Assembly (NCBI GenBank): GCA_048013815.1
Contig: CM106586.1
Coordinates: forward strand, 6,696,001 to 6,760,000
DNA: 64,000 nucleotides
Reading direction: 5' to 3'
From: Setoptus koraiensis
Taxonomy: Eukaryota; Animalia; Arthropoda
Within the stretch, counting starts at the first letter, position 1. Each line of letters opens with the position of its first letter. The translations under genes were made by a program, and so were the position numbers. This document shows, in pieces, positions 5,203 through 37,426 of this stretch. The notes under the pieces were generated by a model, which saw only the letters and a program-made list of their open reading frames with translations, was not told the origin of the DNA and ran no database searches.

Positions 5203-5296
5203 CGCCGTATAGGGTGAGTGGCGCAGGTGAGCTGCACAGGCGCTCTGGCCGCGGCTCACCTGTGCAGCTCGGCTGCGCCACTCACTCTATGCGGCG
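5203..5296. other. Long inverted repeat / hairpin, 38-bp stem and 18-nt loop (pri-miRNA-like geometry)
   Basis: 5203-5240 pairs with 5259-5296 with one G-G mismatch and three G.U pairs; loop 5241-5258. Four more pairs (5198-5201 with 5297-5300) form past a single bulge. Confidence 0.85.
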
Positions 5297-8020: not shown

Positions 8021-8053
<33 letters not shown>

Positions 8054-10557: not shown

Positions 10558-12570
10558 TTACGTAACAAGCTCGCGCAACTGTCACCACCAATTGCTGACC
10601 AATGTGTCTCGGGGCCAAGACACACCACCTAGCGACAACTCACGAAAGTTACGTCACGTTTATTGTCGCCCACATAACACCGTGTCACGTGTCAACACGA
10701 GTTACAGGTGGCAGTGGCGGCGACAACAAACTAACCAACCAACCAACTGACTGTTGGGCTCCTTTTGGGGAGTTTGGGCCTATCGGCCTTTTGAGCATTT
10801 TGGGCCCATTGGCCTTTTGGGATTTTCGGGGATTTTGGGCCCATTGGCCTTTTGGGATTTTTGGGGATTTTGGGCTCTGCCCAGACAGCCCTAATCCGGC
10901 AGTTTAGACTTGCGCAGTCTGGAAGAAGCGGCACAGTCTGACAAGTTAATAGTTACGTAACGCAGTGGTTTTACACTCATGACTCATCATGCGAGTGGCC
11001 GTTTCAAATCTTACATGGCAGCGAGCAGCAGCTTGTGGCCAGTCTGGGCTCGGTATGCCATGTTACAGTTACGTAATAGCTGTCCAGCTCTCTCGGCTGG
11101 CTAATAATAATACGCTCGCTTCGCCAGAGAATAATTGGCGCCAAAACGATGATAAAGACGTCGGTCTTGTTAACGTGACAGCTAATAGATTGGATGCGCC
11201 AGAGGATGCTGCCGCATTCGAGTTGAATGGCATAGAAAATAAGCGCCGGCGAGCTAGCTTGAGAAGATCGTCGTGATGTGACGGCCACGCCAGATTGTTT
11301 GCGCTTGCCTAGAGGGCCAATTATCTTTTGTGATCCACTTATGGCGCTTATAACACTGCAAACGGCGCTCTTGATACTGCGGATACTTGCACTGCCGATA
11401 TCGCGGACGCCCGGCGTCTCGTTGCAAGCTCGGCCGACTTGCGCAACGGCGGCCCGCCATTCGGAATGGAGCCGTTCGAAATGGAGCCGTTCGAAAGCGA
11501 CCCTTGCAAACTGACCATTGTAACGAGCGGCCGACAAACAAACAAACAGTCCGGCAGGCGGACAGACGGACAGACGGACAGCGAAAGGCCCGTTGGCCGT
11601 CGTACCCGTGGCTCGTCGGCCCGTCGGCTTGTTGGCCGCCACAACTGCGGCCCGCGGGTCGGCCGAGAGAGCGAAAGCTCTCGACTATACATTGTATATA
11701 GTATATATTGTATAGCTGTGCAGCACATGGCAGTTGGCAACTCTCTCACAGAGTTGGCAACCGGCATATAACTGGCATGATGTGCCGGATATTCGCACCG
11801 ATCCCGGCGCAGCGGCTCTGACACGGATGGCCGATATGCGCGGCGGGCATTGTTGCGGGCATGCGTGACAGAGGCGCCGGTAAACGGACTGACAGGCCGG
11901 TCACGGCGTGATTATTATCTCGACACTCGGGCCAGCCACTCAAGTGTCTGTTGTGTTGTTAACATGATATGCAAATCCGATAAAATTCACTGCCATCAAT
12001 GCTGCAGCATTTACGGCGCGCGTCCACTGCGTCATTTGCATAATTTCCGAGTTGTTGTATTTGATGCCGATTCTGCCGGTAACAGCAACAACAACAGCAA
12101 CAACAACAACAACAACAAAAACAAAAACAACAACAACAACAACAGCGGCAACAATAACGGCCGCAAATGTGAGCTATTGATGATGACACCTGTTGTTTTT
12201 GTGTCGCTCTTGGCACTTGTTGCATTGTTGGCGCCTCTTGTTTCACTGCAAGACAATTTTATATGTTGTGTCTCGTCTCACTTACCTGTGTCAGTTAGCG
12301 TGTCCACTCAGTGCGGACTCCACAATGGACAGTGGGCAGTGTAGAGACACTCGCCTATAACACCGAGAATTATTATTGTACGACTAATGCCAAAACAACT
12401 ATTGTGAATGCCAGAATGCAACGCTTACGCAACACAAGTCATGTGGCATAAGTCATGTAGCATGAGAGTTGCGCAACAACACACAAGTTACGTAACATGG
12501 GTTACGTAACATGGGTTGCGTAACATAGGTTAGTTGCAAATTAGTTGCCTCATATCACATTGTTACGTAA
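10558..12570. promoter_or_regulatory. Cluster of palindromic TTACGTAA (PAR-bZIP/Giant/Vrille-type consensus) sites
   Basis: TTACGTAA at 10558, 10953, 11069, 12488, 12502 and 12563, interleaved with TTGCGCAA and TTGCGTAA variants. The motif is seen directly; its function is inferred. Confidence 0.4.
12487..12528. repeat. 14-bp tandem repeat (gttacgtaacatgg) x3
   Basis: Copies at 12487, 12501 and 12515 (third copy gttgcgtaacatag). Confidence 0.9.
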
Positions 12571-12654
12571 CTAGCCCGATAATGATGCCGCATGCGTTGC
12601 GCAACGAGCTCTCCATGGCGCACACTGTATGGCAGCTCGCAGTGTCTCGAGTGA

Positions 12655-12686
12655 CTCGAGACTCTACTAGAGAGTAGAGTCTCGAG
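12655..12686. repeat. Perfect 14-bp inverted repeat with 4-nt spacer
   Basis: ctcgagactctact-agag-agtagagtctcgag. Confidence 0.95.
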
Positions 12687-12862
12687 AATCGCACTGTCTA
12701 GACTCTCACAACGGATAGGCAACGGCGAGAGAATTGGAGCAACATGTCAATTACGTGTCATGCGTGTGTCTTCTTTATGGCGCATTCTTTCTCACCGTCG
12801 TCATTAAATGGCTAGCTTGGGATGCGTACGCCTGGTGCTTGCCGTTGCTGTTGCTGTTGTCG

Positions 12863-12894
<32 letters not shown>

Positions 12895-13084
12895 GCTGTT
12901 GCTGCTGCCGCTGTGGCATCAGTTAAATGGTATGTTATGTAACAACACTGTTATCGATTGTGTTATTGGCACCCACGCCAATCACGCTCAATCTCGCCAG
13001 TCTGGCCAAATACTAGCAAACTATTACATGCAATTGCAACTGTGCGCTTGGCATATTACGCAACCCTATGTTACTGTTGCGCCT

Positions 13085-13131
13085 CTCAACTTGACAGTCT
13101 CAACTTGACAGTCTCAACTTGACAGTCTCAA
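13085..13131. repeat. 14-bp tandem repeat (ctcaacttgacagt) x3.4
   Basis: Exact copies at 13085, 13099 and 13113, partial copy at 13127. Confidence 0.95.
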
Positions 13132-15244
13132 GGGGCCTGTCCCTGTCGAGCGGTGGGCTCACCTGTGCCCAAGTGTCGGTGACAATGTTGCCCAATCCGT
13201 GGCCATAACGCCAATCCGTACATATCCGCAGTGTATAATGCGCAGTGTATAAGGCGCAGTGTATAAGGCGCAGTGTATATGGCGCAGTGTATTCGAGCGG
13301 CAACAATAATTGTATATTGCGTAATCGTATGCAAATTGTGAATTGTCGACTGTGTTTTGTTTTGCGTTCAACACACACACACACACACACTCACACCAGT
13401 CAGTTTGGCCAATTTGGCCAGTGAGTCGCCCAATTTCAATTCATTGGCGCCAAAAGAAGACGCCGTGCAGTAAGTGTGAGAATTTCGCAAATATCGCAAG
13501 CATCGTTTCGAGACTCGAGCGGTCATCTTGTCAGACCAATCTCAGACGATCTCAGGCGACTTTGATTGGGCATCCGAGCGCATCAAGCGAGTGATCGAGC
13601 AAATTGTTTCCCTCGTTGCAACAACAACATAATGTGTTTCAACTCGAATAACAAACTTGCAATTACACCAGACAGATATAGTTATGTAATAGTTGCGCAA
13701 TAGCAGCACATACATGTATATTTATATATGATGTTCGTTTGATTTTGCACATCCGTCTAATGCGATTCGATGCGCCATTTTGAGATTGTTTGTGTTGGCA
13801 ATTTGAGTGTGTCCGCTCATTTCAGCTGATCTGATTAGGACGGGCCGAATTGCGCAATCGAAGCATGTAAATTGTTTTATTGATGGCCGCTATTCATGCC
13901 CAAATTAAACCTTTGCACCCGATTAGCCTTGCACTGTCAGAGAGTTCACATGTGAATATGGGCATAATTCATGTGACTGCATAATGCATGCACAATGTAA
14001 TGCAAAAATATATCATGTCTCGCCGGCCGTCATTACGCGTACAAAATAGCAATGAAATGAAGATAAAAAGTAGCCGAGAAAATAAATAATGACCAGCCAA
14101 ATAAATAGGCTATCGGAATGTGAATCGGAATGGGGCCAGGCCAGCACAATATCGGTTAGTATTAGTGTGTCAGCAGTACACAGCCGACGAATGGGCACGC
14201 TGGGCATCTAATGAGCGTCTCGATATTGTCTTAGCTAGATATTGTCTTGGCTGGGTATCGGCAAGATCAAATCGCAGGTAAGACAATGTCAGGAGTGCCA
14301 GTTTTGTGAGCGAGAGTCGTTGCCATGACATGGCCGTACATGTATCGCCTGTATTTGTGGGCCTGAAATTATCTGGAGCAGCGGCCATTGTGAGCGGCTT
14401 TCTCAATAAATATCGAGAAAGCATCATGTAGGCGATCAATGATTTGGCCTTGAAAAATCTCGCCCGCGCGGCCATTGTTGACCGGTGGTGCCACTACGCT
14501 GGACTGTGCACTCTACACTAGAGATGCGGCCAGACGGAGAGATCGATGCAACGAGATCGATTGCAACGGGATCGATGCAACGAGATCGACGCAACGAGAT
14601 CGATTGCGCAGTAACAAGCGAGAGAGCAAAATGTGAACACAATAAACACCGATTGGAAAGTCGTCTCATAATTACGATGCGGCCATAATTGCCCACTGGT
14701 TGGCACACTGACCAGTGAGCGCTGGTCAGTGTGGAGCCAAGTGAGCGCTTGTTGTGCCAGCATTGTGTGCAGCAAATAAACAAACAAAAACAACATGTTA
14801 CATAATGCTAGATAATGGTCATTATCTTAACAACTTTTTTTCTCTTTCTCATATCTCTTTTTTCTCCGATTTCCGACGCCCGCAACACAAACAATGGTTC
14901 CGTCAATGGTTGCGTCAATAGAAAGCGGCAGCGGCAAAATGAGCATCGTCGTGCCAACAACCACAGCAACTACTCTGGCCACTCGAGCTCATCCCAAGCG
15001 CACTCACCTGATGATTGTCAGACACAAAAACAATCGATAGACACGATTCATTATTTATTGCTACTTATTATTTATTTATTATTTATTATTACCTATTTAT
15101 TATTTTTTCATCTAGCAAGATCTCCCCCTCATTTCACTCTGTCTAGCTCTGTCTGACGGCCAGTAAGCAACATCAACACAGAAATCATCATCTGTGTGAG
15201 TCTCATGCCGTTGCCATTAATTAAGAACAACAACAACAACAACA

Positions 15245-18200
15245 ATGGACAAAGATTGTTTCAACTTTTGTAACGGACACTCCACCAATCAGCTGCTTGT
15301 GACAGCGCCAGCGCAAGCAGCTGATTGTCACGACTGTCATGCTGATGCAGGCTGCTCATTGAATACAGCACAACAACTACTTATTAAAACACTGACAAGG
15401 TTACGTCACGATGAGCCAGCAACTGGCTCGTTCGTCTGCCCTCCAGGTGACTTGCCGCTTGCTTGCAATACAAACAACCGGACACTGTTGCGATGCAACT
15501 CGGCAAAAACTCGTGACCACAGCAGCGAGCAGCGATCATCACACAACAAGCCGGACAACGCGTCGCGCCAGCAACAACAGCAGCAACAACCACAGCAGCA
15601 ACAACCACAGCAGCAACAACAACGAGGCCTGTGCAGTAACGGTAAATTATACGAGCAGCAGCAGCAGCGCAGCGTTTGCAGCACAGTGGGCGAGCCGTCA
15701 GCTGGCGAGCTGTCAGTGGATCGCGGTCAGCTGATGGTCAATCAATTATGTCAAGTTGGGCCAACTGGGTGCTGCCAAGTTGTCACAATTGTCACCGGCA
15801 GCGACACTGGCGCTGCCGACCGAGCGCCCGTGCTCAGTTTGTGCTGGGCCGGTGATTTACCGCAAGGTGGCGTGGTTAATTTTGAGCGTCTTATTTACCG
15901 TTGTGTTTGTTATTATTACAGATATTATTATTGTCATTATTTTGTTTATTATTGTTACAACTACTATCACCTATATTGTTGCTATGTTACCAAGCATGGT
16001 TGTTACTACTTGAACAGTTGCCACCGAAGCTGTGACCGCCGGCCCCACTGCGGCCCCACTGCTCGCAAGCGCCCCTCTGGTGGCCGAAGCGAACAATGGT
16101 CAGTCGGCTCTTTCATTGGCCAGTGTATGGCCAGTGTGGCCATGTCAGCTGATTGGCCAGGTTGCGTGATCCAGTTTGCGTTGGAGCATTGCCAGTACTG
16201 GCCAGACTGCACTTGTTTCAGTGCTCCAAATGACGTCTATGATGAGCACCATGACGGAGGCGCGCACCATGACGAAGATGCGCAAGATGCGCAACAAAAC
16301 GAAGGCAAAACAATGATTGTTGTTGTTGTTGCTAAACGTGCACAAGTGCATAATTGTCACCCTTCAGCACAGCGGCAACAGCAACAACAACAACGACAAC
16401 AACAACAACACCGACAACAACAACACCGACAGGTGAACAAGAGCTGCCAATTGGAACAACAGCAGCAACAACAACAACAACAGCACGGTTTGCATTTGTT
16501 GCTGCCGGCGAGCATGACGGGCATGCTGAGCAGCGGCATGACATGCGCCAATCAAATCGCCAACGCAACCGTTATTCTAGCTTGTTACGTCGGCCAGGTG
16601 AGCGCCATTGCAGGTTGCACTTGTCATAGTGACCAGTGGGTTAGTTGCGCCAACTATGACGCAACAGCAACTACTGATGCGGCGACCCGTTATGTCCGTT
16701 GCCATGTTAACGTGCGTTTAGGCGCACCGTACGCACCGTGCGTATGTGTGTCGCGTATGGGGGATCAGCGGCTGCAGCACATGATAATCGGGTACGATGA
16801 TGATCACGATTATGCACAACAATTACTGTATTACATAACAGCGGCAACAGCGGCAACAACAACAACAACAGCAACAACGACAGCGGCAACAGCAACAACA
16901 ACAGCAACAACGACAGCGGCAACAACAACGACAACAGCAAGCCATTGTAGGCTAAATCAACAGGTCAATAATTGCAATGTCATGGACACTGGCTCGATTG
17001 ATGGCGGGCTTTGTTGTTGGCTGGCCTATAGTTGGCGCAATAACGCAATAACGGCACCGCAGCGCTCGCTAGCCTACATGAGCTGTCACAATTGCGCAAT
17101 TTCACCTTATTATTATTATTATCATTATTGTTGTTATTGTTACGCAACGAGGCGCGCCGACGGGCCGCCAGAGCAGCGCTTGTCTCGTCATCGGATCAGC
17201 GCAGTGGCAGCCGATTTGAGTGGCGAGGCGGCGCAGTATTGCGCAACAGCGGCGCCGACCGGTGCAATTGTTATTATTCATTATTATTATTATTATTCAA
17301 TTGGTCGCGTTATTGAATATCGTGCCGGCGACAATGATTTTCTGGTGCAATCGCAGCAACGACAACAACAACAACAACAACAGCAACAACCGACTCACAC
17401 ACAAACTCAAACGGACCGGTCTAAATCCAAATGGTCGGCACATGAGCCGTCGGCGTCGCGCCGGCGGATGAGCCAACAAGAGCCAACGAGCGGCTTGTTG
17501 TCATGTCATAATAATACAACAAGTATCAAAACAACAACAACAACAACAACAGCAACAACAAGCTGCAATTACGACAGCCAGTCGGTGGTGTCGATGTTGC
17601 TGTTGTTGCTGGTGCTTATTATTAAAAAGCACACCAAGAGGAACAAGAGCAACATCGCAAATGGTGATGCAACACGTCAAGACAATAGACCGATGTTGAT
17701 CATTGCGCAACATACTTCGGCGCGGCCTTGTGAGAGCGCGGGAAAACAGTTATACGCAACAACAACAACAACAACAACGCCAACAACCGGCGCCAACAGC
17801 AATAATGATGATGACGATGGCGCGAGTGGGAGTGGCAGCGGAGCTAGTTGCTTGCGGCGGCCGCGGCGGCAGCAGCAACAACATGCAGTTGTAAAAGAGA
17901 ATTTCCGCTCGCGTATCGGACGGGATGCGGCCGAGCGGCCGGGCCGACAGCAACATCAAGCCAACGAGAGCAGTGCCGTCAGACAGGTGAATTGTCCGTC
18001 AAACGCTAACCATGATCATCATCATACTGGCCGCTCGTTGGCGTGCCACAAGCACGGACAACAACGGCAACACCAACAGCTGATGGCCTGTTACTGCTCA
18101 CCTGTCCGCTCACAACTGTCACAAGTGACAGGACAACAAACACACAACAGCGACAGCGACAACAACAACAACAACATCAACAGCAACAACAACAACAACA

Positions 18201-21200
18201 ACATCAACACAAAACGATCAGCTACCCTTTTGATGCCCTCGAGTGCCCTTGATGGGCAGCTCGTAATTGACGACGATGCCCGCACGACGCAAACGATGCC
18301 AGCGCATAAATGTGGGCCACCGCTGACAACAACAGTTGCGGTTCGTCTGGCCGTGGAGCAGCAACGAGCGGTCAAGCGACGAGCGGCCGAGCGACGAGCG
18401 GTCAACGCGAGCAAGGGCAAGTCTCAAAAGTCATCGTATGTGTCCGTGCAGCTGTTGCTGTTTTGCGCGTGGCAACTAATTTGCATAATTGTCGCCAGCA
18501 CGAGCTGGACAGGTGGCAGCTCGTTCGGGGTGGCCGCCGACGCGGCTCACAGCGAAACCAAACAACGACAACAGCAACAACAACGACGACAACAACAGCA
18601 CGAGCAGCAGTATAGACGAATGTTGTACAACTTGCACACGGACGACGCAGGGCGCCAACAGCAACAGGTGAATGGGGGCGACGACGAGCCCATAATTATG
18701 CACTCGGGTCACACCGGTCAGCTGGGCCTGCTGAACGAGACGAGGCTCCGCCGGAGGCCCGCGATCAAGGTCGAGCTGCCGTACGTTGTGGCATTGAGCA
18801 ACTCAATTGGCACCAACAACAACACCTCCCACAACAGCCGCTCGCCCGCACAGGTGAAGCAAGCGACCGGTCAGGCTGGCGTTGGCACGGGCGAGCAGGA
18901 GACCGCCGGTGACAGCTTGCCGGGTGAGCAGCATCAGCAATTGCGCGCTATGGGCAACGAGCCCGCGCATGTGCCGGGCTCCTCGGGCGCGAACGCGGCT
19001 GTGGCGCCCGTGGGTGTGGGGCCACCGTCGCAAGAGTTTGACACGCAATCGGACCAATCGGGCGGCTTCGCAGCCGATGGCCAGGGCTCCACAATAATAG
19101 CAGCAACCGCCACAATACAATCACACGAACAGCAACAAACGCGGCCGCAACAGTCCGCGGCCACCTTTTATCATTTGCACCAGACGGACAGGCACGCCCC
19201 AAAAGAGCAAACCGCGGCCCGGCTACCGGCTACCCAGTCGCCGCGACCGGCGACCCAGTCGGCGCTGGCCAGTGGCCCGCCGGCGGGCACCAAGAAGCAA
19301 GCTTCGCAGACTACAACCGTGCCCGCGAGCATGACGGCAGCGGACGCCGGCGCGGCCATAAAATCGCCGCCCGCGGAAACAAGCAGTGACACGCCCGCGG
19401 CTTGGATGACACTGCCCTATCGGGACAATCATCACGGGTCGGTGAGACCGCGCACGACTCCCGCCGCGCACGGGCCCGTCATTGCGGTGAACGATGCGCA
19501 AATGATGCAATCGTCGCCCCAGTCATCGAGCGACACCGACGGCGATGTCATAATTGTCAATGCGTCGCCGCACAACAAGACCATTCCCGAGCAGCATAAT
19601 GAGGATAATCCAGTCAATCATCAGTTTTACAGCGGGCGACAGCAAGCGATGGGCTTCAACAACACCGTTAGTTTGTTCAATCGCCGCCAGACGGCAACAA
19701 ATTCAGCGGCAAACAACCTGTTACATAACGGCAACAACAATCAACAATTGCAACTGCAACAACAGCTGGCCGCTCAACTTTTGGGCCGGCGCAACTCGAA
19801 ATTCACCCGCCAATCAACAACTTCCACCACGCCCATGACACCGGCGGCCGCGGCTGACGGAGCCCCTACGGGCGGGCCGGTGCAAGTGGCGCCCGCCAGT
19901 GCATCGACAACGCCGACGGTGGCGCCCAGCGCGGCCGCCGGCCCGACTACACCGGGCGGGCCCGCGGATCTGGCCACGGTCGTGTTGCACAATCGACACT
20001 ATGGCGTCAGTTTGCGTCCGCTCAGTGTGGCGCTGAGCGCCACGCCCGCCCCGCTATCCGGCGCCAGTGCGCAACAACAACGGACAACCGTACCGCCGGC
20101 CACAACTACAACCACCGGGCCGCCACTCAAGCAGCAACAACAGATCAACAACAACCTGTTGCCGCCGGGTAGCAACGGCAAGTATGAGACCGACGCGCAC
20201 GTGGTGCGAGCCGCAACCAACGCGGCCGGCGCCGGCAGCCCCACGGCCGCTCCCGCTGCGCTGGGTAGCACTAGCACTACCCAGAGCAGCGGCGAGGCGA
20301 TCACCGGAAACGGCCACGTGGGGGTGGTGCCCGTTCACGAGGCCGAATGGTTGTTGCGCAAAATGGAACTGCAACAGAGACAACCGCAGCCATTGTTGCA
20401 GCAACTGCAACAGCTCAATCCGTTGGGTCTATTGTCCGCGCTCAACAGGTGGTCACTGTCGGGCGGCAATGTTGCGCAAGCCGCGGCAGACGCACCGGCA
20501 ACAGCGCCAACAACAACCACGACAACAACAACCACGACGACGACGACGACGACAAGTGCACCTCCGACAAGCCGATCAGCTGCCACAACAACGACAGCAG
20601 CAGCAACAACAACAACAACAACAACCGCTCCGTCGATTCTGAACAAACAAGCGAGTCTCAACAAGACCGCTGTAAACAATGGGCCCAACGAAGTTGCCGG
20701 CCCGCTCCGGCAGCAACCGACGACAGCGACCAGCAACAACAACAATAGAAAACATCAGAGTCAAACGAAGCATCATCATCCAAGCGTCGTAATAGGCAAC
20801 AAGCACGACGACGACGACCCGGCCGACGTACCCATTGTGCTGGGCAATCACCATCACGGTCGGCTCAACAAAATACCCGGCATCACCGCTCAGCAGGTCG
20901 CAGCCAGCGCCAGCAGCAACAACCAAACCAACAAAAATACCCACGCCAATATGATTAGGCGCGAAATACCCGTCACCACCACCGTGGCCGCTAGTAGCAC
21001 GACAATGAGACCGCCGGGCGCGCCCGTCGAGCCCGTGTTCAAGAGAGCGGCTCAACAGCAACATGACGGCGACCCGCTAGTCACAACTAACCAGCATAGC
21101 AGGCATTCGTCGAGCGTCTTCCCGCAGCAGCCCGGCGCCGTCAGCGGGCCCGCGTCGGACCGCACCACTCGGGTCGCGAGCCAGAGGTGGTCCAATGCGG

Positions 21201-22918
21201 CCGCCAATGTGGTCATGCAAAAGGTATTGCCCACCTTGTTGCACAAGACCCTGAGCAGCGTGCTCAAGCGATTCGGCCAATACTACAGCGGAACAACGGG
21301 CTCGCCGGCCACCACCGGCAACAACAACCAATCGCCGGCCGGCTATTCGCCGGCCGAGTCCGGCCTGGGCGCCGCGGGCCTCGTACAGGGACTGCAGGCG
21401 GCCAAATTGAACCGGCCCAACGCGTTACAAGCGACCGAGCCGGCCCGACACAACAGTGCCGGCGTGTCGCTAATAGACCGTTTTGTTGTCGTTGCCGGCC
21501 ACGCTAATTCGGCCGGCACACTAGAGGACGCCACTGGCGACAGTGCCGCTCGAGGGGGCCCGCATGCCAACAAGAAGATCATCGACTCGCTCATTGATTT
21601 GCCCACCAGCGAACGGCGCGCCTCTAGCCAGGTGCTGCTGAAACGATTCGGGGGCGTGATGCAAGGCGGGCCGGATTCGGACTTGCTCGATCTCGATTTG
21701 GATAGTGACAACGTTGCCGATAATGACAACGGCCCGGCGGCCAGTTCAGAGGCGGACTCGTCGCGGTTGGTAGCGGAAGCGCGCACAAGCGCGGGCAACA
21801 ATTACGCTCAGCAACAGGTACGCCAGTTGCGGTCGACCTCGGCGGCCCCGTCCGACGACGGGCGACTCGGGCTCCGCTCCAACGCGGCCGACAGCAACGA
21901 CATCGACGCAGACCAGCCGGCGCCACTGGACAGCAACAGCAGCGCGGATAATTTGGGCGTGAACGGGGATAATTCAGAGGATGGCGACGAGCGGCAATCG
22001 AGCGGCGGTCACTGGACGATCAGCGGTTCGGACGATGTTGCCAGCGGCGTCAGCGACAGCGCCGACGACGGCGCCGACGCGGATGCCGCCGACGACGACA
22101 ATTACGTGACGTACGATTATGGCGTGCCAACAAACAATTTGCACAAAATGAGCGACTCCGCGTCGCTAGATCCCGCCGAGGGCAAACCGTTGTATTATGC
22201 GGCGCACAGTTTGGCGGGTTTGGCAGCGCCGCAAGACCCGTCTTCGCCAACAGTGCGACCAATCAGGGAGAGAATAAACCCGTTCGGGCTGAACATGTCG
22301 GCAGCCGTGCGGCCGCAGCCAGTTGCACCGCCGACCAGCATCAAGCCAGCGGTTAGCAGCACTTCCGGTCAGCATGCGGCAGAGTTGGGCTTGCCGGTGG
22401 CGGGCGGAAACTCGGTCGGGCACGTCGAGCAAGCTGTAAGACGCCAACCAAACCAACAGCACAATAACCAGGCCAATCACAGTCACAGTGGTGGCGCCCC
22501 TAGTGGCGGAAGGCCGCACAAGAAAAAGCCCAATAAGCGCCGCAAGCCGGGCAACCATGCCAACCAGCAAGCCAACAACAACAACCACAACAGGCAACAA
22601 CCAAATCGACCAACAACAGCGACGGGCGCCGTTGTGCTGGTGCCACCAAAGAGAGCACCTAGCGGCAGCAGCGGCAGCCAGCAGGGCGCCGGTGGCGCCA
22701 GTAGTATGTTGTCGCCCATGTCGAGCTCTATCAATGTGCTTGATTTGGATCCGTCCATGACGCAATTGGCCCACAATAAGCTTATTGTCGCCAAGTACAC
22801 ACACAATCAGTTACGCAACAAGCTGGCCGGAGCCCGAAAACCGCCAAAGTCGGGCGGCCCGAACAGAACTGCGGCCGGAAGTCGTCCGTCGTCAGCACAG
22901 GACAGCAACAGCAGCAGC

Positions 22919-22974
<56 letters not shown>

Positions 22975-25900
22975 CGGCAACAGGTATCAGCGTTTGAATT
23001 CGACCGGAAGTCACCAGGCGGCCCCGTTCGCGTCCACTAACAACGGCATGCAAGTGCTAACCAACAATCACGTTAGCGACATAATCAATAGATGGACCAG
23101 ACCACCTGTAAGCACAACAACAACAACAACAACAACAACAACGTCAGCACCGGCCCGAATCACTGTGACAACAACAACCACGACTGCGCCACCTGTCGCG
23201 TCAGCACACAATCAGCACAAATTGCACAATCCGCTCTATCAATCCAACAGTGCCGCTGCCGGAACCGGAAGTAGCCGCGATCGCGCCCGGCCCAAGCCTC
23301 TGCAACCGTCGGTACAGGTGACTTCGTCCGCTCATAGGCCGACGCCGGCTTTTCTTGCGCTCAACAACAGCACCAACAGCAGCAGCGGCAATCCTCTGTT
23401 GCCGCTCGGGTATCCGCTCAGTACTCGCACAGCTTTGAATTATACTAGCAGCAATGCGGCCGCTCAGCAGCCGGCAGCAGCGACCGCTATTCTGGCCGGT
23501 GCCGGTGACATCACAGAGCCCGTCAACAGACCGCCCACGGGACAGCGGCTTCGTCCACGCCCGCCTCACATTGGCGGCTCGGCGGGTAGCGGCGTTCACT
23601 TGGCGCACAACAACAAACCAAACACACCCGTCAGCAGCACAACCACCAGCACCAGCACTACCACTGTTGCGCCCGTTGTCGTTTCGACAGCCGCGCCGGA
23701 AGCGAGTGCCGGAGCGGAGGTGGGGGCAGCGGCCAACGAGACTGCGGTCGGCCCGAACGATTCAACGGACAGACAACAGCAGCAGCAGAAGAATAAAAAC
23801 AGTTACTCTGTGGTGCTGATAAACAATAGAGAGCGCATCTCGAACAAGCAATCTCTGTTGGCTCATTTGCAAAACTCTATGGTGGTCAGTTCCAATTTGA
23901 AGCCGGCCTCGTTCGGTCAGGTGGATGCGGCGGCGCCGGCGACGGCCAGCAGCAGCAACCAGACCCAAGCGAAGCCGCAATCCGACATGTCGACGGTGAG
24001 CGTGTCGAATCAGTTCTCCAACGGCACCCAATTGTTGTTGTTGGCCGGAAATAAGCAGCAGCAACAGCAACATTTGGACGAGCCAACGATATTGGTGCGC
24101 AACCAGCACGAGCGACGGCCGCTAGGCAAGCCCGCGTCGAGCGGCGCCGGCCCGGCAAGCTCACAGTTGAGTCAAAATCACCTGAATGAGTCGACGATCG
24201 TCATTCGGCACGAGCCAGCGGCGGCCAACAGTCAGCTGTTGAGCGGTCGCAACGGACTCGTTTCCGGTCACGTTTCTCTATTGAGTCCGTTGGCTGTGCC
24301 GGCCACAAACAAACAACAGAATGTGTCTTCGTTGGGGTCCGGGCAGGCGCAGCAAGTGCCCGCTCTGCCAACGGAGCCCGCTGATTGGTCGGCGGCGCCC
24401 GATCATATGGCCATGAAATTGGTCAAAGACAATCATCAGCCGGGCGCCGGCGGCGCCCATTCGAACAACCGGAAACCCGCGGGAATGTGGGGCCCGTTCG
24501 GTGGCCAGAATAAGCAGCCGCAGCAGCAGGCCACCACAACCGCTAGCACGCCCATTTCTACCCGTAGCACTGATTCAAATGCATCTAATGCGGCATTGGC
24601 GGCTGGCGCAGATTATAGCGGCGCCGAGGCGGATGAACAGCAGGAAAATCTGATGATTACGGTGCCCACAATTGCCAACAGATATCTGGACGAATTGGTG
24701 AACGGCAGTCGCATTAGACCGTCGTCGATGGCCACGCAAACCAGCAGCACCAGCACAACGCCCTCTAGCCTGGAGGACGCGAGTAACGAGGGACCGGAAA
24801 TGGCTTCGGAGGACCGAAGCAACGGCGCCGGCGAGGATAATTCAAGCGACAGCAAGCACACAATGTCAATGGCGCAAAATAACAATCACAATGTCAGCCA
24901 AACCGGCGCCCAGCCTGAGCAGTATTTTTCGCGCAATCGCATCAATCCAATACATGCCATACTGAGCAGCGGAAACAGTATCAAGGGCCAGAGTGACACA
25001 ACAGTGACATACGTGCTAGAGAACACAAACAAATTGATCAATTACAAGGTGGGCAATCACTCGAACAAGCACGCGAACACGCGCAACAAGTACAGCGCCT
25101 CGACAGCGCACAGCCTCAACAACAACCTCAACAGCAACAACAACAGCGACAACAACCAAGATCAGCTGTCTGTCAACGCCAGCCGACCGTCGACTGTCGG
25201 CTACGATCACGAAGCCACCAGCACCGGCCGAGTTACCGGCAGCACGGGTAGCGCGGCCGTCAGTTCAGACGACAGCCGCTTGGAATACGATCATAGACAC
25301 CAAGAGATAAATGCAAACAACAACAACAACAACAATGACGTTTACTCGTTTGTGTCCGTGTCGCCCGTTGACGGTTCCACTCTGTCGTGGGAGCAACAAC
25401 AAATTGACAATCAGCCCATGATGACCACCACTAAGCGTGTTGTGCAACCCGTCACCCTGGGCTACGATTATTCCTATGTTGTTGTCAGCAGCAACAGCAA
25501 CAACAACAACACAACAACAACATCTAGCTCGGCCTCAATGCCAACAACTGACGCTGTCATAACTGACAGCAGCAGCATTGGTGGCAGCGATGAGGACGCC
25601 GCAACCACCGACTTGACCACCGTTGACACAACTGTATCCTCGAAACAGCAACCGTCCACTTATGCGTCCATCTCCGAGCTAGGTGGCGCCTCCGTCACCA
25701 CTGCAACCACCGACTACACCGGCGACTCCAACAACAGCGCCGGCAATAGCAACAACAACAACATCGGCAACAACAGCAACGACAACAACAACAGCAACAA
25801 CAGCAACAACCTGGTCACTTATTATCCGGTTGGGGGCAGCACGGCCACTCGAATGCAGCCACAATCAACAACGACGCTGACACCCATTGAGTTGCCCAAT

Positions 25901-28900
25901 GGGGCGATTGTTGTCCGACCCGATCAGCATCAACAGCAGCAGCAACAGCAACAGCAGCACCATCAACAGCAGCAACAACAACAACAACAACAACAGCAAC
26001 AACAACAGCAGCAACAACAACAACAACAGCAACAACAACAATCAGCTGATCACCAATTCAACCGAGTGGACCAAATGGATTCGTCGGATCAGTCGGACCA
26101 ATCGTCGTCGACTGGCGGCCAAACCAACAAATACAACAATAATCACAATGATGTTGTGGTGAGCACAACAACGGGCTCGACATCGACCGTGCAAGCGACC
26201 TCTGGCGACTCTCTCGTTGGTGCCAGTTCCTCTTCTGTAGATACCAATCTCAATGCTGCCGGCAACCAGCAAAATGGTGAAACGCAAAACGGCGCCGCAA
26301 CGGCAACAGATGACGCAATAGAGGATAGACGCGATATTGTTCAGGCTAATTCAACGCAAATTCACAACAACGGTGCCAACAACTCACTAACTACCACTGA
26401 GGATCCCCTATTGGCCTCGCAGGAAACCTCAACTCAGTACACGCTGACGTTACCCACTAATCAACGTTTTCCATCGCTGGCCCTGGCCAACAATCACTCC
26501 ATGTCAACGGGCCCGTCGAGGCCCTCTAGTGGACATTTGGAGACAACCGTTATAACAAGCGAACAAGTGCAGCACAATCGCAACAGAATCAACAAGCCAA
26601 ACACGGGCCTGGCCACCAGTGGCATCACTCAAACGCCCAACAGTGTCACCAAACCGATGGGGGCCAGTTTCCGGCCCCAGACGCCTCTGAGGCCCACCAC
26701 GCCCGCCAGTGTGGCGGCGCACCACAACCACAACAATTACGACAGCCACAACAACAACAACAACAACAAGCAGCGACCCGGCAACAAGAACAAGCCGCAC
26801 AAACCGGCCCGACCCAGCAAACCGACGCGGATCAGGTTGCCGCCCGTAGAGCGGCCCGTATATTTGCCCGGCGAGCCTGCGGGACAAGGTGTGTCGACAC
26901 CAATTCACGACGACAGCCTGGTCAGCAGCCCCGGCTACGAACAGCTCGACAGCGACCAGTTTGACGGCGCCAATCACCCGAGCGGCCCGGTGACCGACTT
27001 CAGGCCGCCCGTGCCCGTCGCGCCGCAGCTGATCAGGCCGGCCCAAGTTGCGCAACAGCAGCCCGCCAAGCACAAGCCCGCCTTCATCATCCTGTCCACG
27101 GGGCCCACCGGCCATCATCATCATCACCACCATCACCCGCACCGGCCCCAGCAGCAGCACATCCTGTATCCGGTTCCGCCCAAGAAAGTGCTCGTGCATC
27201 ACACCTCCGTTACGTCGTCCAATCCCGTCAAGCACCGCCGGCCTTGGATACCCGTGCCGCCTGAGGCCATTGTGGCCACAGACGGCACCCATTATGAGAT
27301 ATTGGACTCGTCGCCCGTTGACATGTCGGCGGCCGCCGATAATCAGCTCAGACCGCACGCCCAGCCGAGCGCCGGTCACAACGCGGATCAATCAAGCGCG
27401 CACGATTTAGATACCTCGGACGTGCTAGAGCCCGTGTACCACGTGCATCACGCCAACACCAACAAATACCGGCCCGCCTATCATCAGCATGTGAGGCCCG
27501 TGACGCCGGCCACCGGCTACGGACCCCGTCGGCCCGTTATGCAGCAGCAACAGCAGCAGCAGGTGGCTATGGTGCCCATAATCCGGAAACGGCCCGCGCC
27601 GCCCGAGCACATCCGCATACAAGCGAGCGGCGGCAACGCCAACCAGGCCAACAACCTGCAGGAGGTGCCCAACGAGAATGCGGTCACGTCAAGCCACCAT
27701 GACAACAACAGCAACAACAACGGCCAAGACGACTACTCGAGCGAAAGTGATCAATCTCAGTCGGACGACGACAACCCGGCCGACTCCGGTCAGCCGCTAC
27801 CGGACGACGGCGCGGACGCGGACGACTCGGGCGCACTCGACGCCGGCCCGTCGTCGGATGGCGGCCCGTACCAGCCGACCACTCAGGTGAGCCAGGCGCA
27901 GCAATTTGTGCAATTCGCGCCCCAACGGAGGCGACCGGTGCCGTTCAGGATCAAACACATTGAGTCTAACATAAAGAAAAAGGACGAAAATGTGCGCACC
28001 AGGCCACTCATAATAGTCGACCCGTCGTCGGCGCTGCCCGGCGACCCGCCGCACCGCCAAGAGGACGTGCCCACTAACACGGACACAACAATATTGCACC
28101 AGAATATGGTTGTCACTTACAGGCCGGGCAGGCCGAAACCGCAACGGCGACCACCGCTCGTGCCCGCCGCCGCCTCCACAACCACGCCGGCCACTCCCAC
28201 CACCCAGTATCCCGTGTTTGATGTGTCGCCCAGTGTGACCCAGTTCAGGCCGCATCAGCAACAATCAAAGGTGCCCAATGTGACGTCATCGCACGACGAT
28301 TACAACGACAATGACCAGTATGACATACCCAATAACGGGAACACCAACGGCCGGCCCGCAAACAGCTCCACCGCGGCCACGGCCATATCTACGGCCACCG
28401 CAACGGCAACAACCACAACAACCACAACCGCGACCCTGTCGGCCGGCGACAACAACATTGTGTTCATTGTGCACGACAACACCAACAGAACCCATCACCA
28501 CGCCAACCAGACGCTGCCGGGCGCCGGTCTGCACCAGAATCACACCGGGCAAACGGTGCAACCGCCCAACATTAGCACCGCGGTCACATCGAGCGGCATC
28601 GGCGCCTCACTAGTGAGCATATCGTCGTCACTGTCCACCGGACAATCACTGTCGCTCCAGACCACCACTCCGTATCCGCCCGCGCCCTCGGTAGTTTATC
28701 CGCACATAATAATCCGGCCCGTGGTCGACATCGAGAATGTGTCGCCCGGCGGCTATCCGTCGTCATCGTCGTCGTCGTCGAGCGGCCCTCCCCGGGGCCA
28801 GCCCTCGCCCAGGCCCGCCTATTCGAACCCGTACGGGCAGCAGCAACAGCACACGACTAGCGCGCCGCCGCCCGCGCCACCCTCAAGCCACCTCGGTCAC

Positions 28901-29695
28901 CCTTACTACCCGCCAAATCGCACGCACCCGCACGGCGCCAACGCGGGCTCATCCTCGTTGAGTGCTTCGTTAATTGAGGCCGGCTCACTGTCTGTGGTGG
29001 CGCAAGCCTCGCACGGCAATCAATCCCAATACCAGAAGCCCTGGTACCCGACGGTACAGCCCAACGGGGCCGGTTCGTCTGCGTCTGGCGGCTCTTCCGG
29101 TTCGTCGGGCTCCATGGGCGGTGGATCGGGTGGCGGCAGCAGTGGCTCTAGCGGGCTGATGAGCTCAATTATAAAGCGCAACAATGGCACAAACAGTAGC
29201 GGTCACTCTAGTCACTCTCACGGCGGCCACCAGAGTTCGTCACTGTCATTGGGCTCTAGCGGGGGCGGCGGCGCTGGTGGTGGCGCTGGCGGTGCAACAA
29301 GCAGCACAACTAGCGGCAACAACAACAATGACAACAACAACGGCAACAACAACAACAACAACATCGGTATGCCCTATTACGGGCAGAGTTATCACCAAGC
29401 GAGGCCCACAAAAAAGTCTAGATGGCGCTTGAGGAGACCGTTTTCCGGGCACCACAACGGAACGCACACGGATCACATGTCCACATCGTCGTCAAACAAT
29501 TATCCCACCAGCTTGGGGGCGCCCAGGCCCCCGCCGGCCTCAATTGGGGCCATGTTCTCGTACAACTCACTGATGGCCTTATACGACAATATAGCCATCT
29601 TTTTCGCCAGATTGCGCACCTTTTTCATATCGCTGATGGTGATGTTCTTGCCGCCGTTGGCGCTGGCGGCCTCAATAGTGAACGCCATGTCCTGA
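15245..29695 (+). CDS. Giant single-exon low-complexity (Q/N/T/S/P/A-rich) mucin-like protein, probably secreted or membrane-anchored; true start may be 18233 or 18296
   Basis: 4816 codons without a stop. Hydrophobic signal-like stretch VQLLLFCAWQLICIIVA at ~18446-18496; C-terminal hydrophobic segment IAIFFARLRTFFISLMVMFLPPLALAASIVNAMS from 29591; poly-N x19 at 22919-22975; long poly-Q at ~25927-26040; AATAAA at 30409. No globular domain recognised. Confidence 0.85.
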
Positions 29696-29789
29696 TCATT
29701 CACTTCATTTAATTTATTAGGCAAATTATCAATTAATTAATCACTGACTCACCAAATGTGTCAGTTCGATCGCCGTCCGGCCTGTGCCG

Positions 29790-29861
29790 CGCAAACCGGA
29801 TGTGGCGCACAAACCGAATGTGCCTCGCAAACCGGATGTGGCGCGCAAACCGGATGTGGCG
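29790..29861. repeat. 18-bp tandem repeat x4 just 3' of the giant ORF
   Basis: cgcaaaccggatgtggcg-like copies at 29790, 29808 (diverged), 29826 and 29844. Confidence 0.9.
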
Positions 29862-30710: not shown

Positions 30711-31019
30711 GGCGCGAGCTGATTTCCGGCTGAACGAACGTGAACTTGAAAATTCAAAATTAAATTCAAAAATAAAACGCTCAAACGAGCCGAGAGAGGC
30801 CCGCGGTGATGCAACCAGCCCAATGATGGGCCTCCCGACGAGCTCCCGTTGACATGAAAATCAATCTCTAGCCAATGACATGTCGGCGACACACATTGCG
30901 CGCAACGCACTGTCAGCGCACAACATTGTGATTGCGTAACAATGTCGTCGCGTAACATTGTGATTGCATAACGGGATTGATTGATTAAATTAACGTATTA
31001 ATTAATTGGGGACACTCAC

Positions 31020-32103
31020 CTTCGTCGTCGCAGTAGCAGTCGCAACATTTTGCGTACTGGTTCAGCGCCGCCTGGTAGTGGGCGCTGGCCGCGTTTTGAA
31101 AGTGGCTCGTGGAGCGTTGATTGGTGTTGGCTTGATGCGGCTGCTGCTGGCCCAAATGGGGCCCGTCGGCACACAAGCGCCTCACGGTGAGCAGAAGCTG
31201 ATTGTTTATGGATGAATGCTGTATTAATTGGTAGGCAAAATCGAGCTTGCTGAGCTCCTCTTTGAACTTGTCAGTTTGTTGTTGTTGCTGCTGTTGCATG
31301 TCGTTGTTGCTGAGGAACACCTCGTTGTTGTCGGCGTTGTTGTTGCACTGGCTGTTGATCGTTTGCTGCTTCGTTTGCTGGTTGTTGGCGAGCCCGTTGC
31401 CGACGCTGTTGATGTTGCCGAGGCTGCTGATGTTGCCGGCCAGCGGGCCGGTCGGCGGCGTGTTGAGGTCGAGCGGCGAGTTGGGCTGCGAGCACTGGCT
31501 GTTGGACTGGTTAGACGGGTCCGCGGGCGCGCCGGTGGCCGCCGCGCTGTCCGGCAATTTGTTGGCGTGTCGCTTGCTGGCGGCGCCCGGCCCGGCGCAA
31601 ACACTGGCCGACAGCAACAGCGAGCGCGGGTGATTGTCCAAATGAACGTTGTTCACGGCCACCAGTTCGTCGTTCACTTGCAGGCCGCTCTTTTCCGCGG
31701 GCCCCTTGCATATTTTGCTCACAATCACCTGCGCCTCCACTTGCCTGATGCGAAAGCCCCATTTTGGGCCGCCCAGCAGCACCAAATCAATCAACTGGAA
31801 TGGCTTGTCTGGCTGCTGCTTGCAATTAATTAGGCCGCTCGCGCTGTTACTGTTGCCGTTACTGTTGCTGTTGCTGTTGTGATTATTATGATTATTGTGA
31901 AAATAATGATTATTATGCAAATCACTCGATTGGTCGCACAGGTCGCCGAAGAACACGTTGTGGCCGGCGGCTTGCTGCTGCTGCTGCTGATGAGGCGTGT
32001 TGCTGCTGGTCAATGAGCCGGCAGCGACCGCGCCAACGGTCCGCATGTTGGCCGGCTGAAATGCGAGCTCGGCTTGCTGCTGCTGCTCGACGCTAATTAG
32101 CAT
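31020..32103 (-). CDS. First coding exon of an N-terminal-PDZ protein (Shroom/PDLIM-type PDZ); downstream exons not identified
   Basis: LVLLGGPKWGFRI...IVSKICKGPAEKSGLQVNDELVAVNNVHL, then FAYQLIQHS...LLLTVRR, matches the GGxxWGF PDZ class. ATG at 32103 with an upstream in-frame TGA. Perfect AAG|GTGAGT donor with the intron starting at 31019 (phase 1). Confidence 0.8.
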
Positions 32104-32846
32104 GTTCGCTCACCGCGCCTCACCGGGCCCCACTGCGGCTCGCTGCGGCCCACTCGGCCCAATCGGCTCACTGCGGCTCGCTCGGCCCAATTGGCGGCCC
32201 AATCGGCGGCTCGCTCGGCCCAATCGGCGGCCCGGTCACTGAAACGGCCGGCTCAGGTGCGCACAGCTGACTGTCGGGGGTGCTCAATTAGCGTGGGCGG
32301 CTGGACAGCGCGCGTCGACATGCTAGCGGCTAGCGCCGTTCGGCTGGCTACCTGCCTGCACAATCTTGCGGTGGCTGGCGCTGAGATTCGCTGGGCAGCA
32401 ATTTATCGTGGGGCCGCTTATCGGGGGCCCTTTATTTGGGGGCCCTTTACCGTTTATCGCCTGTTTATCGGGCGCCGCTGGCCTGGGCAAATTTCGGCGT
32501 TCGTGTTGGCGTTCGTGTTGGCGTTCGTGTTGGCCTGTCTGTTTGCGTTCGTGTTCGTGTTGCAACGCCAATCGCGGCTATTTGACTCGACGGGTTTGAC
32601 GGCACATTTGACAAATTTGACACTGCACATTGGGGGCACACACTGGGCACAGGTGACACTGGTAACGCTGGTTCGCTGGCTCGTTGGCTCGCTGGTCGCA
32701 AGCCAGATTCTTGTCGCGGGCTGGCTGTTGAGGACGCTGACGACGATTGTTGCGACGGTCTGACTAAACGATCTTGCAAAAGCTTCTCGGGGCCCCACTT
32801 TTCGCAATCTCGGCCCTGTGCTATATATTACAAACACAAAAATATA

Positions 32847-33280
32847 TTGGCTCACGCCATTGATCAAAACGATCGCTTGTTTGGTTGGTGGAGATTTTTG
32901 TCGCCAGCCTGGCAGCCGCTGAATTGCCGATGCAAAGCGACTTTTATTTCATCGACACGCACAACGCGCACCCCAAACTGGCGCACACTTCACATATGCG
33001 CCATTCTATTCCTATTATGCTGCTGTTCCTATTATTACTGCTGTTTATACTGTGCTGCTGCCGCCGCCGCTTGCACCGCTGCGCCACAGCCAGCCAGCCA
33101 TTCCCTGGCAAGCTTGCCCCCATGCCTGCCCAACGCAACCCGTGAGGCTGGCCCTGGCGAGCTGGCCGCGGCGAGCTTGCCAGCAGCTGCGCGTTCACAC
33201 GTATCTCGCAGCAGCAGCAGCGCCAATGCCAATTATGTGGCCATAGAGCACGCACTGCTCGAGAGCGCCGTTATTGCACA

Positions 33281-33312
<32 letters not shown>

Positions 33313-33653
33313 AACAACAGCAACAACAACAACAACAGCAGCAGCAGCGACAACAACAACAACAACAACGGCAACAACAACGACAGCAACGACAACAGCG
33401 ACGCTGTGTAAGCAAAGCCCCCCTCAGTGGGGCCCCACTGGCCCTGTGCCGCCGCCGCCACTCGATGTGTCAGCCCGTGCGTGTGCGCCTGTGCGCCCCT
33501 GTCCCGCTCTCGATGCCTCGATCAAATTGGCCATTGTCTGTGTCCAACTGCGTGCTGCCGGGCCCCACCGCGGCTGCCTTCGTGGGGCCCAGCGCCGAGA
33601 CTGCACGCACTTGCTTCTTGCGTGCCGCTCGCACACACGCACAGACAGTTTAA
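32847..33653 (+). CDS. Possible poly-Q ORF or exon divergent from the PDZ gene (unidentified)
   Basis: Frame open from 32586 to 33653 with a C/Y/A-rich hydrophobic stretch and a ~40-residue Q tract. No early ATG, and (CAA/CAG)n repeats suppress stops, so it may be spurious. Confidence 0.25.
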
Positions 33654-36600: not shown

Positions 36601-37426
36601 GAAAGATAGGTTTGCTGTTAGCCTTTTTATTTTCACGGCCAGATTCAAAACGATCTTACTAGAAGCTTGATGATGTTCAGTCACAACAACTGATCGATGG
36701 CCGGCCACTTTTCGCATTATCATCATGAATATTATCAATGCAAGAAGCCACCTACACTTATGTCATAAGGACAAGCATTAATGGCACAGTTCGTAACAAT
36801 TCTCCGAAGATACCCCTAATCTTCTCGACCCGTACGATACTTTGAGAGTTTCTATTGTTTTTTATTTTTGTTTCATTACCACTATGACAATGGATTGAAA
36901 CAACCAGGTCCACGTCATTGTATACGTTGAGCTATAAATTGGGAATGTCAACATTAGTATCAAACTATCTCGCTCGCCATGCTCAGATTACCAACAATCA
37001 GAAGATTGTAGATGCACCAGCTTGTGGTTGAGTCTCGTCAGACAGAATCATAGAAGAAAAAGAAAAATAGCAGATATATTCTAAAGCTTAGACAGGATGC
37101 CACGATTTTGTAGCGCCATCTCGAATGATGATGATCTTCGGTTATCATCACGTGAGTACGATATGTAGTAATTAAACTAATGGCGATATTTTAGAAAAGT
37201 GCCCACAAGACATTGACGAACAAGATAAGATAAGTAGACAAGTCTTGGTAGTCGAGTCATTAAGTTAATTTTATTTACAGCGAAGCAGCTTCAGACCTCG
37301 TATGTTGAGAACTTCATCATTTGCATTGAGCAGCTAAAGTTCCCATAATATTGCAAGTTGATGATAGAGACTCGAGTATCCATAGTTCCTGATCGAGAAT
37401 CACGAACACTGGTGTTATCGATTACA

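Follow-up and report, generated by a model that had tools for sequence, protein, structure and literature searches.

A Giant Intronless Gene of the Mite Setoptus koraiensis Points to an Undescribed Family of Disordered, Probably Surface-Tethered Secretory Proteins

Introduction

What kind of protein does a mite encode in an open reading frame (ORF) of 14.45 kb that requires no intron and shows no recognizable domain? This question is raised by positions 15245-29695 of a 64,000-nucleotide stretch of the Setoptus koraiensis genome (GenBank assembly GCA_048013815.1, contig CM106586.1, positions 6,696,001 to 6,760,000), hereafter referred to as the window. The genomes of eriophyoid mites rank among the smallest and most streamlined known from animals (PMC7738191, PMC11920263), and the chromosome-level assembly of S. 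koraiensis comprises 47 Mb on two chromosomes with an N50 of 24.53 Mb (PMC11920263). Intron loss has been described for eriophyoids (PMC7738191), and a gene of 14 kb without introns fits this pattern. A preliminary description, drawn up from the letters of the window, had proposed a domain-less, disordered surface or secreted protein of mucin-like or scaffold type. Here, we report that this ORF, which belongs to an eriophyoid (gall or rust) mite, is a real gene consisting of a single exon. Sequence comparison identifies it as the largest member so far of an undescribed, unnamed and Pfam-less family of giant secretory proteins, which appears to be restricted to eriophyoid-type plant mites.

Results

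An Open Frame of 4816 Codons

Reading frame 0 of the ORF contains no stop codon, whereas the five other frames carry 6-34 stops per 1.5 kb and about 122 stops would be expected from the position-specific base composition (log10 P = -53.5). An in-frame TAA at 15218-15220 precedes the initial ATG by 27 nt, and this ATG has an A at -3 and a G at +4. The periods of all tandem repeats within the ORF are multiples of 3. In the body of the ORF, by which we mean everything after the first 1017 codons (region 1, discussed below), three-base periodicity is strong and the GC content at third codon positions (GC3) amounts to 0.69. The uninterrupted frame, together with the collinear and likewise uninterrupted frames of its relatives, bears out the intronless ORF of the preliminary description. 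Its account of the composition and of two hydrophobic stretches, including the quoted terminal motif, could be recovered as well: The protein consists of S (10.9 %), A (10.2 %), T (9.0 %), Q (8.7 %), N (8.1 %), P (7.2 %), G (6.9 %) and H (4.1 %) as its principal residues, and Kyte-Doolittle hydropathy has its maxima at aa 1066-1084 (2.32) and in the C-terminal segment 4783-4812 (1.9-2.2), with weaker peaks at aa 438-460 and aa 775-793.

A Family of Giant Proteins

The gene has one relative in its own genome. Searches covered the 48,755,295-b assembly with its two contigs, C1 (24,221,962 b) and C2 (24,533,333 b), the window corresponding to C2:6696001-6760000. The C-terminal 230 aa of the window protein detected a paralog at C1:8147010-8157869 (-), which spans 3616 codons from its first Met and carries the same terminal motif as the window protein, its hydrophobic segment being located near aa 75-100; the reciprocal search returned these two copies only. 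In databases, an exhaustive phmmer search with the last 1200 aa against 1.84 billion representatives gave one true relative, P0001 (2266 aa, E = 7.7e-27), which also matches the last 110 aa with E = 2.6e-26. When the C-terminal part of P0001 served as the query, a word-index search recovered P0003-P0009 (2397-3301 aa, E = 7.6e-87 to 2e-30). These seven proteins, which originate from read-archive, ENA and JGI assemblies, are unnamed and contain no Pfam domain; like P0001, they were compared at the level of the protein sequence. A metagenome scan added three loci, namely L013 from a plant metagenome in ENA as well as L014 and L015 from JGI.

Neither a further nor a named member emerged from a profile search with an alignment of ten family sequences (A1). 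Pfam yielded no match at E<=1 for the entire ORF and none at E<=0.1 for ten family members, in agreement with the previously claimed lack of a recognizable domain. The last 110 aa produced one chance match in the PDB sequence search (E = 0.8), the last 616 aa no usable match in the ESM Atlas, and the eriophyoid genome papers that we checked do not mention such a protein. Word-index and exhaustive searches brought up no relative with a name or a Pfam domain, which fits the lineage restriction suspected beforehand. However, the exhaustive search missed seven relatives with near-identical tails that the word-index search later recovered; with a low-complexity query, its near-blank result is therefore no evidence of absence. 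The taxonomic range of the family consequently has to be read as one established from databases in which eriophyoid genomes are scarce and by searches that low-complexity sequence desensitizes.

The genomic context distinguishes the two copies of S. koraiensis. The PDZ exon that lies downstream of the window gene is located by tblastx 450-960 nt past the stop codon in L013, L014 and L015, whereas it is absent downstream of the C1 paralog. For this reason, the window gene is taken to be the positional ortholog of the three loci and the C1 copy a diverged paralog; upstream of the gene, no synteny was found between the window locus and L015. L013 and L014 differ in 9 codons, 7 of them synonymously and 2 non-synonymously, as well as in one in-frame indel of 5 codons (binomial p = 0.002 versus neutrality). 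This small sample of 9 codons from one ortholog pair indicates purifying selection on the chain as a whole.

Shared Anatomy of the Chain

At the N-terminus, five of the eight database relatives start directly with a classical signal peptide, and the remaining three, L015 and the paralog have a hydrophobic segment at most ~110 codons from the first Met; this supports the secretory-pathway part of the earlier proposal of a surface or secreted protein. The window protein has a signal-like segment in the homologous place, about 60-80 aa before the island PIVINSVHSG, but this segment comes after 1065 open codons of coding-like character, the closest Met lying 48 codons upstream. In all members, some 23-28 short conserved islands then follow, always in one order: PIVINSVHSG … RRNSKFTRQ … HANKKIIDS … LAHNKLIVAK … NNRER … VNGSRIRPSS … TRPLxIIDP … VVTYKPGRP … EAGSMSVVA … IGMP. 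An automatic criterion returns 23 islands with 278 columns, corresponding to <10 % of the length, and the window protein agrees with the consensus in most of these, their order being kept. The sequence between the islands is variable, of low complexity and difficult to align. Several islands contain near-invariant His or basic-Pro pairs. In the window protein and the two relatives checked, an acidic block comes after the island HANKKIIDS and gives way to a basic one. Four N-x-S/T sequons are retained in 7-8 of the ten sequences, and conserved sequons of the types NFS and NGS occur.

Between signal segment and tail, the chain is cysteine-free: Cys is missing from every 100-codon bin of aa 1101-4800 and makes up 0.1 % of aa 1018-4816, while five of the eight relatives contain none in the whole protein and the other three 1-3. 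With K+R and D+E at 6.9 % each, S+T at 20.9 % and P at 8.2 %, the chain of the window protein is a neutral polyampholyte. AlphaFold2 was applied to the L013 ortholog, specifically to its central 1200 residues and, with the family alignment, to its C-terminal 519 residues. The central part has a mean predicted local distance difference test (pLDDT) score of 36 and six isolated helices, several of them on conserved islands, but no domain; the C-terminal part has a mean pLDDT of 46, with all values <50 except for a 44-residue terminal helix at 77-95. The disorder that had been claimed for the protein is thereby reproduced in 1719 residues of an ortholog (mean pLDDT 36-46, isolated helices only). 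Throughout the family, disorder is predicted for the chain between signal segment and tail, the 2,200-3,700 residues of which are dominated by S, T, A, Q, N and P.

The tail is the best-conserved part: 26 of 27 positions of the window protein are identical to the family consensus, compared with 27-45 % identity in the rest of the protein. An amphipathic stretch and a hydrophobic span with the invariant core F-x-P-P-x-x-L-x-A make up the last ~45 residues, and only 4-5 residues extend beyond the span. The terminal helix motif F-[LF]-P-P-x-[AF]-L-x-[ALG], which stands 4-8 residues before the stop codon, is found in the window protein and is common to it and the C1 paralog. Approximately 70 residues from the C-terminal end, the family proteins carry a basic motif, at which the chain may be cleaved. 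The coordinates of all features are collected in Table 1.

Table 1. Position of the gene, its conserved elements and its downstream neighbor in the window.
Feature	Position	Strand	Remarks
Whole ORF	15245..29695	+	4816 codons + stop; ATG start; no intron required; relatives have collinear ORFs without interruption
Region 1, species-specific N-terminal extension (aa 1-1017)	15245..18295	+	Cys 5.6 %, Tyr 4.7 %, GC3 0.50
Met1018, candidate alternative start	18296..18298	+	A at -3; 48 codons before signal segment
Hydrophobic signal segment (aa 1066-1088)	18440..18508	+	Hydropathy peak 2.32; signal-peptide-like h-region, small-residue c-region, basic N-terminal flank
Island 1, consensus PIVINSVHSG	18686..18712	+	From family alignment
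Island RRNSKFTRQ	19787..19813	+	8/8 identical to family consensus
Island HANKKIIDSxIDLPxSERR	21563..21619	+	Followed by acidic block, then basic block
Island MSPMSSSINV.DLDPSMT.LAHNKLIVAK	22706..22798	+	Second half is a predicted helix in ortholog (AlphaFold2 helix 513-527)
Island YLEEFVNGSRIRPSS	24680..24727	+	Carries conserved N-G-S glycosylation sequon
Islands TRPLxIIDP and TTIxHxxMVVTY[KR]PGRP	27989..28141	+	Retained in paralog; low-confidence AlphaFold2 beta-hairpin
Island [LV]EAGS[LM]SVVAxASHG	28970..29017	+	13/15 identical
Basic juxtamembrane motif, consensus RPYRWRVxRRPNGN	29402..29449	+	R-L-R-R in window protein; possible proprotein-convertase-type site
C-terminal helix (amphipathic stretch and hydrophobic span with FLPPLALAAS)	29555..29692	+	Ends 4 residues before stop
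PDZ exon of convergent PDZ-RhoGAP gene	30985..32103	-	Pfam PDZ; synteny anchor
RhoGAP exons of PDZ-RhoGAP gene	37427-38797	-	Pfam RhoGAP

Surroundings of the Two Gene Copies

On the opposite strand downstream of the window gene, the PDZ exon (GC3 0.76) and two RhoGAP ORF pieces (GC3 0.39-0.40) look like one gene of the ARHGAP21/23 type (30985-38797). Because GC3 shifts by almost 0.4 within this gene, the GC content of codons evidently tracks regional composition on the kb scale in this genome. The 1.3-kb gap that separates the two genes contains, about 90 nt past the stop codon, an 18-bp unit, TGTGGCGCGCAAACCGGA, in 4.4 copies (29783-29861). On the other side of the ORF, neither strand of the ~10 kb at 4500-15244 shows a convincing coding frame, so that a genome of 49 Mb has a long stretch without genes here. 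Beyond the PDZ-RhoGAP gene, AT-rich DNA includes an open frame of 1401 codons at 47443-51648 (+; GC3 0.37), the only matches of which are sub-threshold ones to TPR/HAT repeats at aa 1027-1095.

Turning to the paralog, it retains the terminal helix, the signal segment and three of the islands near the C-terminus, but few of the others. Upstream of it, at C1:8163095-8165998 (-), lies a 968-codon frame that resembles a protein kinase followed by a repeat region. Another locus, L006 (L024-L026; C2:13568425-13580319, +), came up as a weak match and was rejected as a family member: Its uninterrupted frame of 3965 codons is an unrelated, Cys-containing and Q/S-rich gene. This frame is rich in Q, S, A, T and N, contains 117 cysteines and has a run of ~50 Gln close to its end. 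Streamlined as it is, the genome has kept several very long genes of low complexity.

Discussion

Proposed Role

We consider it probable that the gene encodes an eriophyoid giant secretory protein that is tethered to the cell surface by its terminal helix and resides in the apical matrix or the glycocalyx; this reading best explains the data as a whole. The chain would enter the endoplasmic reticulum (ER) by means of its signal segment, receive N- and O-glycans in the secretory pathway and be delivered to the cell surface, where the terminal helix would act as a tether with essentially no cytoplasmic tail. From there, a flexible chain with a contour length of ~0.9-1.3 µm could reach into the apical matrix or glycocalyx, with the conserved islands serving as docking or self-association sites and the basic motif possibly permitting shedding. 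Most likely, then, the protein functions as a glycosylated, surface-tethered scaffold of ~1 µm. Several points weigh against this proposal: Region 1 may be outside the main product, as its Cys content and codon use are sharply unlike those of the body and it occurs in no relative. With S+T reaching only 21 %, mucin-type glycosylation need not be heavy. Basic residues flank the terminal span on the N-terminal side, which would be luminal, but do not follow it, contrary to the positive-inside rule for a type I anchor. Finally, the absence of more distant kin is weakly established, given the relatives that escaped the exhaustive search.

Alternative Readings

That the ORF is no gene, but an open frame arising from T-poor, CAA/ACA-rich low-complexity DNA, could be argued from the scarcity of T on this strand (12-16 % in the body) and from its many triplet repeats. 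However, 122 stops are expected even with position-specific composition, the other two sense frames hold 9-27 stops per 1.5 kb, ten collinear relatives share conserved islands and synteny, and L013 and L014 differ in the manner of sequences under purifying selection, so that we assign practically no probability to this objection and regard it as already refuted by the comparative data. Much harder to judge is where the protein begins. The relatives start 0-110 codons before their own signal segment, and in all ten of them as well as in the paralog an in-frame stop lies 3-110 codons upstream of that segment (5-6 codons before the first start codon in L015 and L013, 3 codons in the paralog); the window gene has 1065 open codons in this place versus at most ~110 in any relative. 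Region 1 is random-like in its amino-acid content, differs from the body in Cys (5.6 vs 0.1 %), in GC3 (0.50 vs 0.69) and in synonymous codon use (Thr, Ala, Pro, Leu and others), and lacks a homolog in all searches made: As a protein on its own it had no match in the protein database, tblastn, blastp, tblastx and blastn found none in the orthologous loci, the family proteins and the rest of the window, and its DNA met only microsatellites in its own genome. It is a serious possibility, though not the one we would back, that region 1 does not belong to the functional protein, which would start at Met1018 like its relatives, the upstream codons being a leader or the relic of another coding sequence fused by a recent rearrangement. 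The A at -3 of Met1018 and the resulting 48-residue basic n-region, which resembles those of L015 and the paralog, are in line with such a start. Against it stands the behavior of the frame itself: Region 1 has no stop where 43 are expected (log10 P = -19; minimum of 32 in 300 shuffles), its three-base periodicity is significant (chi2 = 44.6, p = 6e-8) and that of four upstream intergenic controls is not (p>0.18), and its microsatellites comprise 14 triplet but no tetranucleotide runs and no mononucleotide runs of 6 or more, whereas mono-, di- and tetranucleotide repeats occur at 0.7-0.9 per kb each in the intergenic flanks. Low GC3 was dropped as a sign of non-coding DNA and the GC3 difference is not decisive, because GC3 follows local GC in the window (0.76 vs 0.40 in the exons of the neighboring gene). 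From the lack of stops, the periodicity and the triplet-only microsatellites we conclude that the frame of region 1 is under selection, or was until very recently. Of the ~4800 residues assumed in the preliminary description, the 4816 open codons are thus real, but the ~1017-1065 codons before the signal segment occur in no relative, and since these are absent elsewhere the conserved protein in the window gene measures ~3730 aa. Tentatively, and as a possibility rather than an expectation, the leader may be a young, species-specific coding extension that grew in frame from the unconstrained cytosolic n-region, largely via expansion and decay of triplet microsatellites, the codons for Q, T, N, Y, C and H being frames of the same few A/C/T-rich units; this would have turned a cleavable signal into an internal signal-anchor and created a new cytosolic arm of 1,000 residues. 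If translation starts at 15245, the signal segment would accordingly lie behind a Cys/Tyr/His/Gln-rich arm; alternatively, a shorter form starting at Met1018 (18296) might exist alongside the full-length form.

At the other end of the chain, the main structural rival to a transmembrane tether is a glycosylphosphatidylinositol (GPI) anchor, because the terminal hydrophobic stretch is followed neither by a cytoplasmic tail nor by basic residues. In this case, the stretch would be an attachment signal that is removed in the ER, leaving the mature protein lipid-linked to the outer leaflet. Basic residues before and none after a hydrophobic end are the usual layout of a GPI signal, and the combination of a signal peptide with a hydrophobic stretch extending to 4-5 residues from the C-terminus, would agree with it, as would the small residues (D, N, A, S) that some members have 8-10 positions before the span. 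GPI signals are cut off, however, and are usually poorly conserved, whereas the tail is the most constant part of this family; moreover, a small residue at ω+2 is seen in some members only, as judged by eye, and the preceding amphipathic helix is conserved too and forms one continuous helix of 44 residues with the span in the AlphaFold2 model. It is in particular the extreme conservation of the tail that makes us regard GPI anchoring as unlikely. A still different topology would result if the bulk of the protein were cytosolic and the helix inserted post-translationally, as in a tail-anchored giant tether of the nesprin/KASH or organelle-tether style. The position of the span at the extreme C-terminus, its basic N-terminal flank and the short conserved end (…MSS) are compatible with this topology, and so are the size and disorder of the protein and the 1065 residues that precede the first strong hydrophobic segment in this species. 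Nevertheless, a luminal orientation is indicated by five relatives, in which a canonical signal peptide of the cleavable type stands at the N-terminus and acidic residues come next; conserved N-x-S/T sequons and also Thr runs are present, cysteines are wholly absent as in secreted disordered proteins, and spectrin, CH or KASH features are not present (none by Pfam; 4-5 residues past the span). Because of the signal peptides, the sequons and the lack of cysteines we rate a cytosolic tether as very improbable.

Significance

This streamlined genome nonetheless retains two intronless genes of 11-14 kb for proteins without a fold, the relatives of which appear to be under purifying selection. The definition of the family provides a handle on an unknown surface or matrix component of these crop pests, and also a clean model for the way in which a giant disordered protein can carry function, namely through a few per cent of conserved islands and a conserved membrane helix. 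If the leader is translated, it would be an exceptionally large case of coding sequence newly acquired before a signal peptide, and one that can be dated; and if it is a young extension, 3 kb of coding sequence would have been gained inside an undescribed, eriophyoid-restricted family of micrometer-long, tethered disordered proteins. Should the protein be merely another lineage-specific mucin-like surface protein, the result would be useful to annotation, but unsurprising.

Comparison with Known Systems

In its presumed manner of working, the protein comes closest to the tethered mucins and sialomucins (MUC1/MUC16, CD43, podocalyxin and insect mucin-like proteins). Like these, the family combines a signal peptide with a long, unfolded ectodomain of great length containing S, T and P, with Thr runs, N-glycosylation sequons and a single C-terminal membrane span, and it is likely to form an extended brush on the surface. 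Yet the protein fails the tests that define them: In the PTS domains of mucins, Ser+Thr(+Pro) exceeds ~40-50 % over long distances, mostly in tandem repeats, whereas S+T amounts to 20.9 % in the window protein, 2 of 74 fifty-residue windows reach 40 %, and Tandem Repeats Finder (TRF) detects short triplet-based repeats only. For these reasons, lacking as it does any long-period tandem repeat, the mucin-like character ascribed to the protein in the preliminary description did not hold. Furthermore, none of the accessory domains of mucins (SEA, EGF, VWD, NIDO/AMOP) was found by Pfam in the window protein (E<=1) or in ten members (E<=0.1), there is essentially no cytoplasmic tail, no sequence relationship exists, and conservation is concentrated in ~25 short collinear islands and the membrane helix.

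The Drosophila proteins Dumpy, Piopio and Papillote are giant membrane-anchored extracellular ZP proteins of the apical matrix, with a presumed role in connecting epidermis and cuticle. The window family resembles them in being giant and, presumably, membrane-anchored and extracellular, and it is likewise of arthropod origin and of comparable size. Dumpy-type proteins, however, consist of EGF/DPY modules rich in Cys together with a ZP domain, and neither a ZP domain before the membrane span nor such modules were found here by Pfam and the Cys count, the mature chain having no cysteines. With GPI-anchored surface glycoproteins the family has in common the N-terminal signal peptide, the hydrophobic extreme C-terminus and the missing cytoplasmic tail, but it differs from them in its near-invariant terminal stretch and in the inconsistent occurrence of small residues at the ω and ω+2 positions, which by eye are present in some members only. 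KASH proteins and nesprins are likewise giant and have a C-terminal span with very few residues beyond it; unlike the window family, which begins with a signal peptide, they end in a luminal peptide of ~30 residues with the terminus PPPX and contain spectrin repeats and a CH domain, none of which was found (4-5 residues past the span; Pfam). Taken together, these likenesses and differences suggest that the window gene and its relatives are best filed as a new, unnamed family among the giant disordered, membrane-tethered surface proteins.

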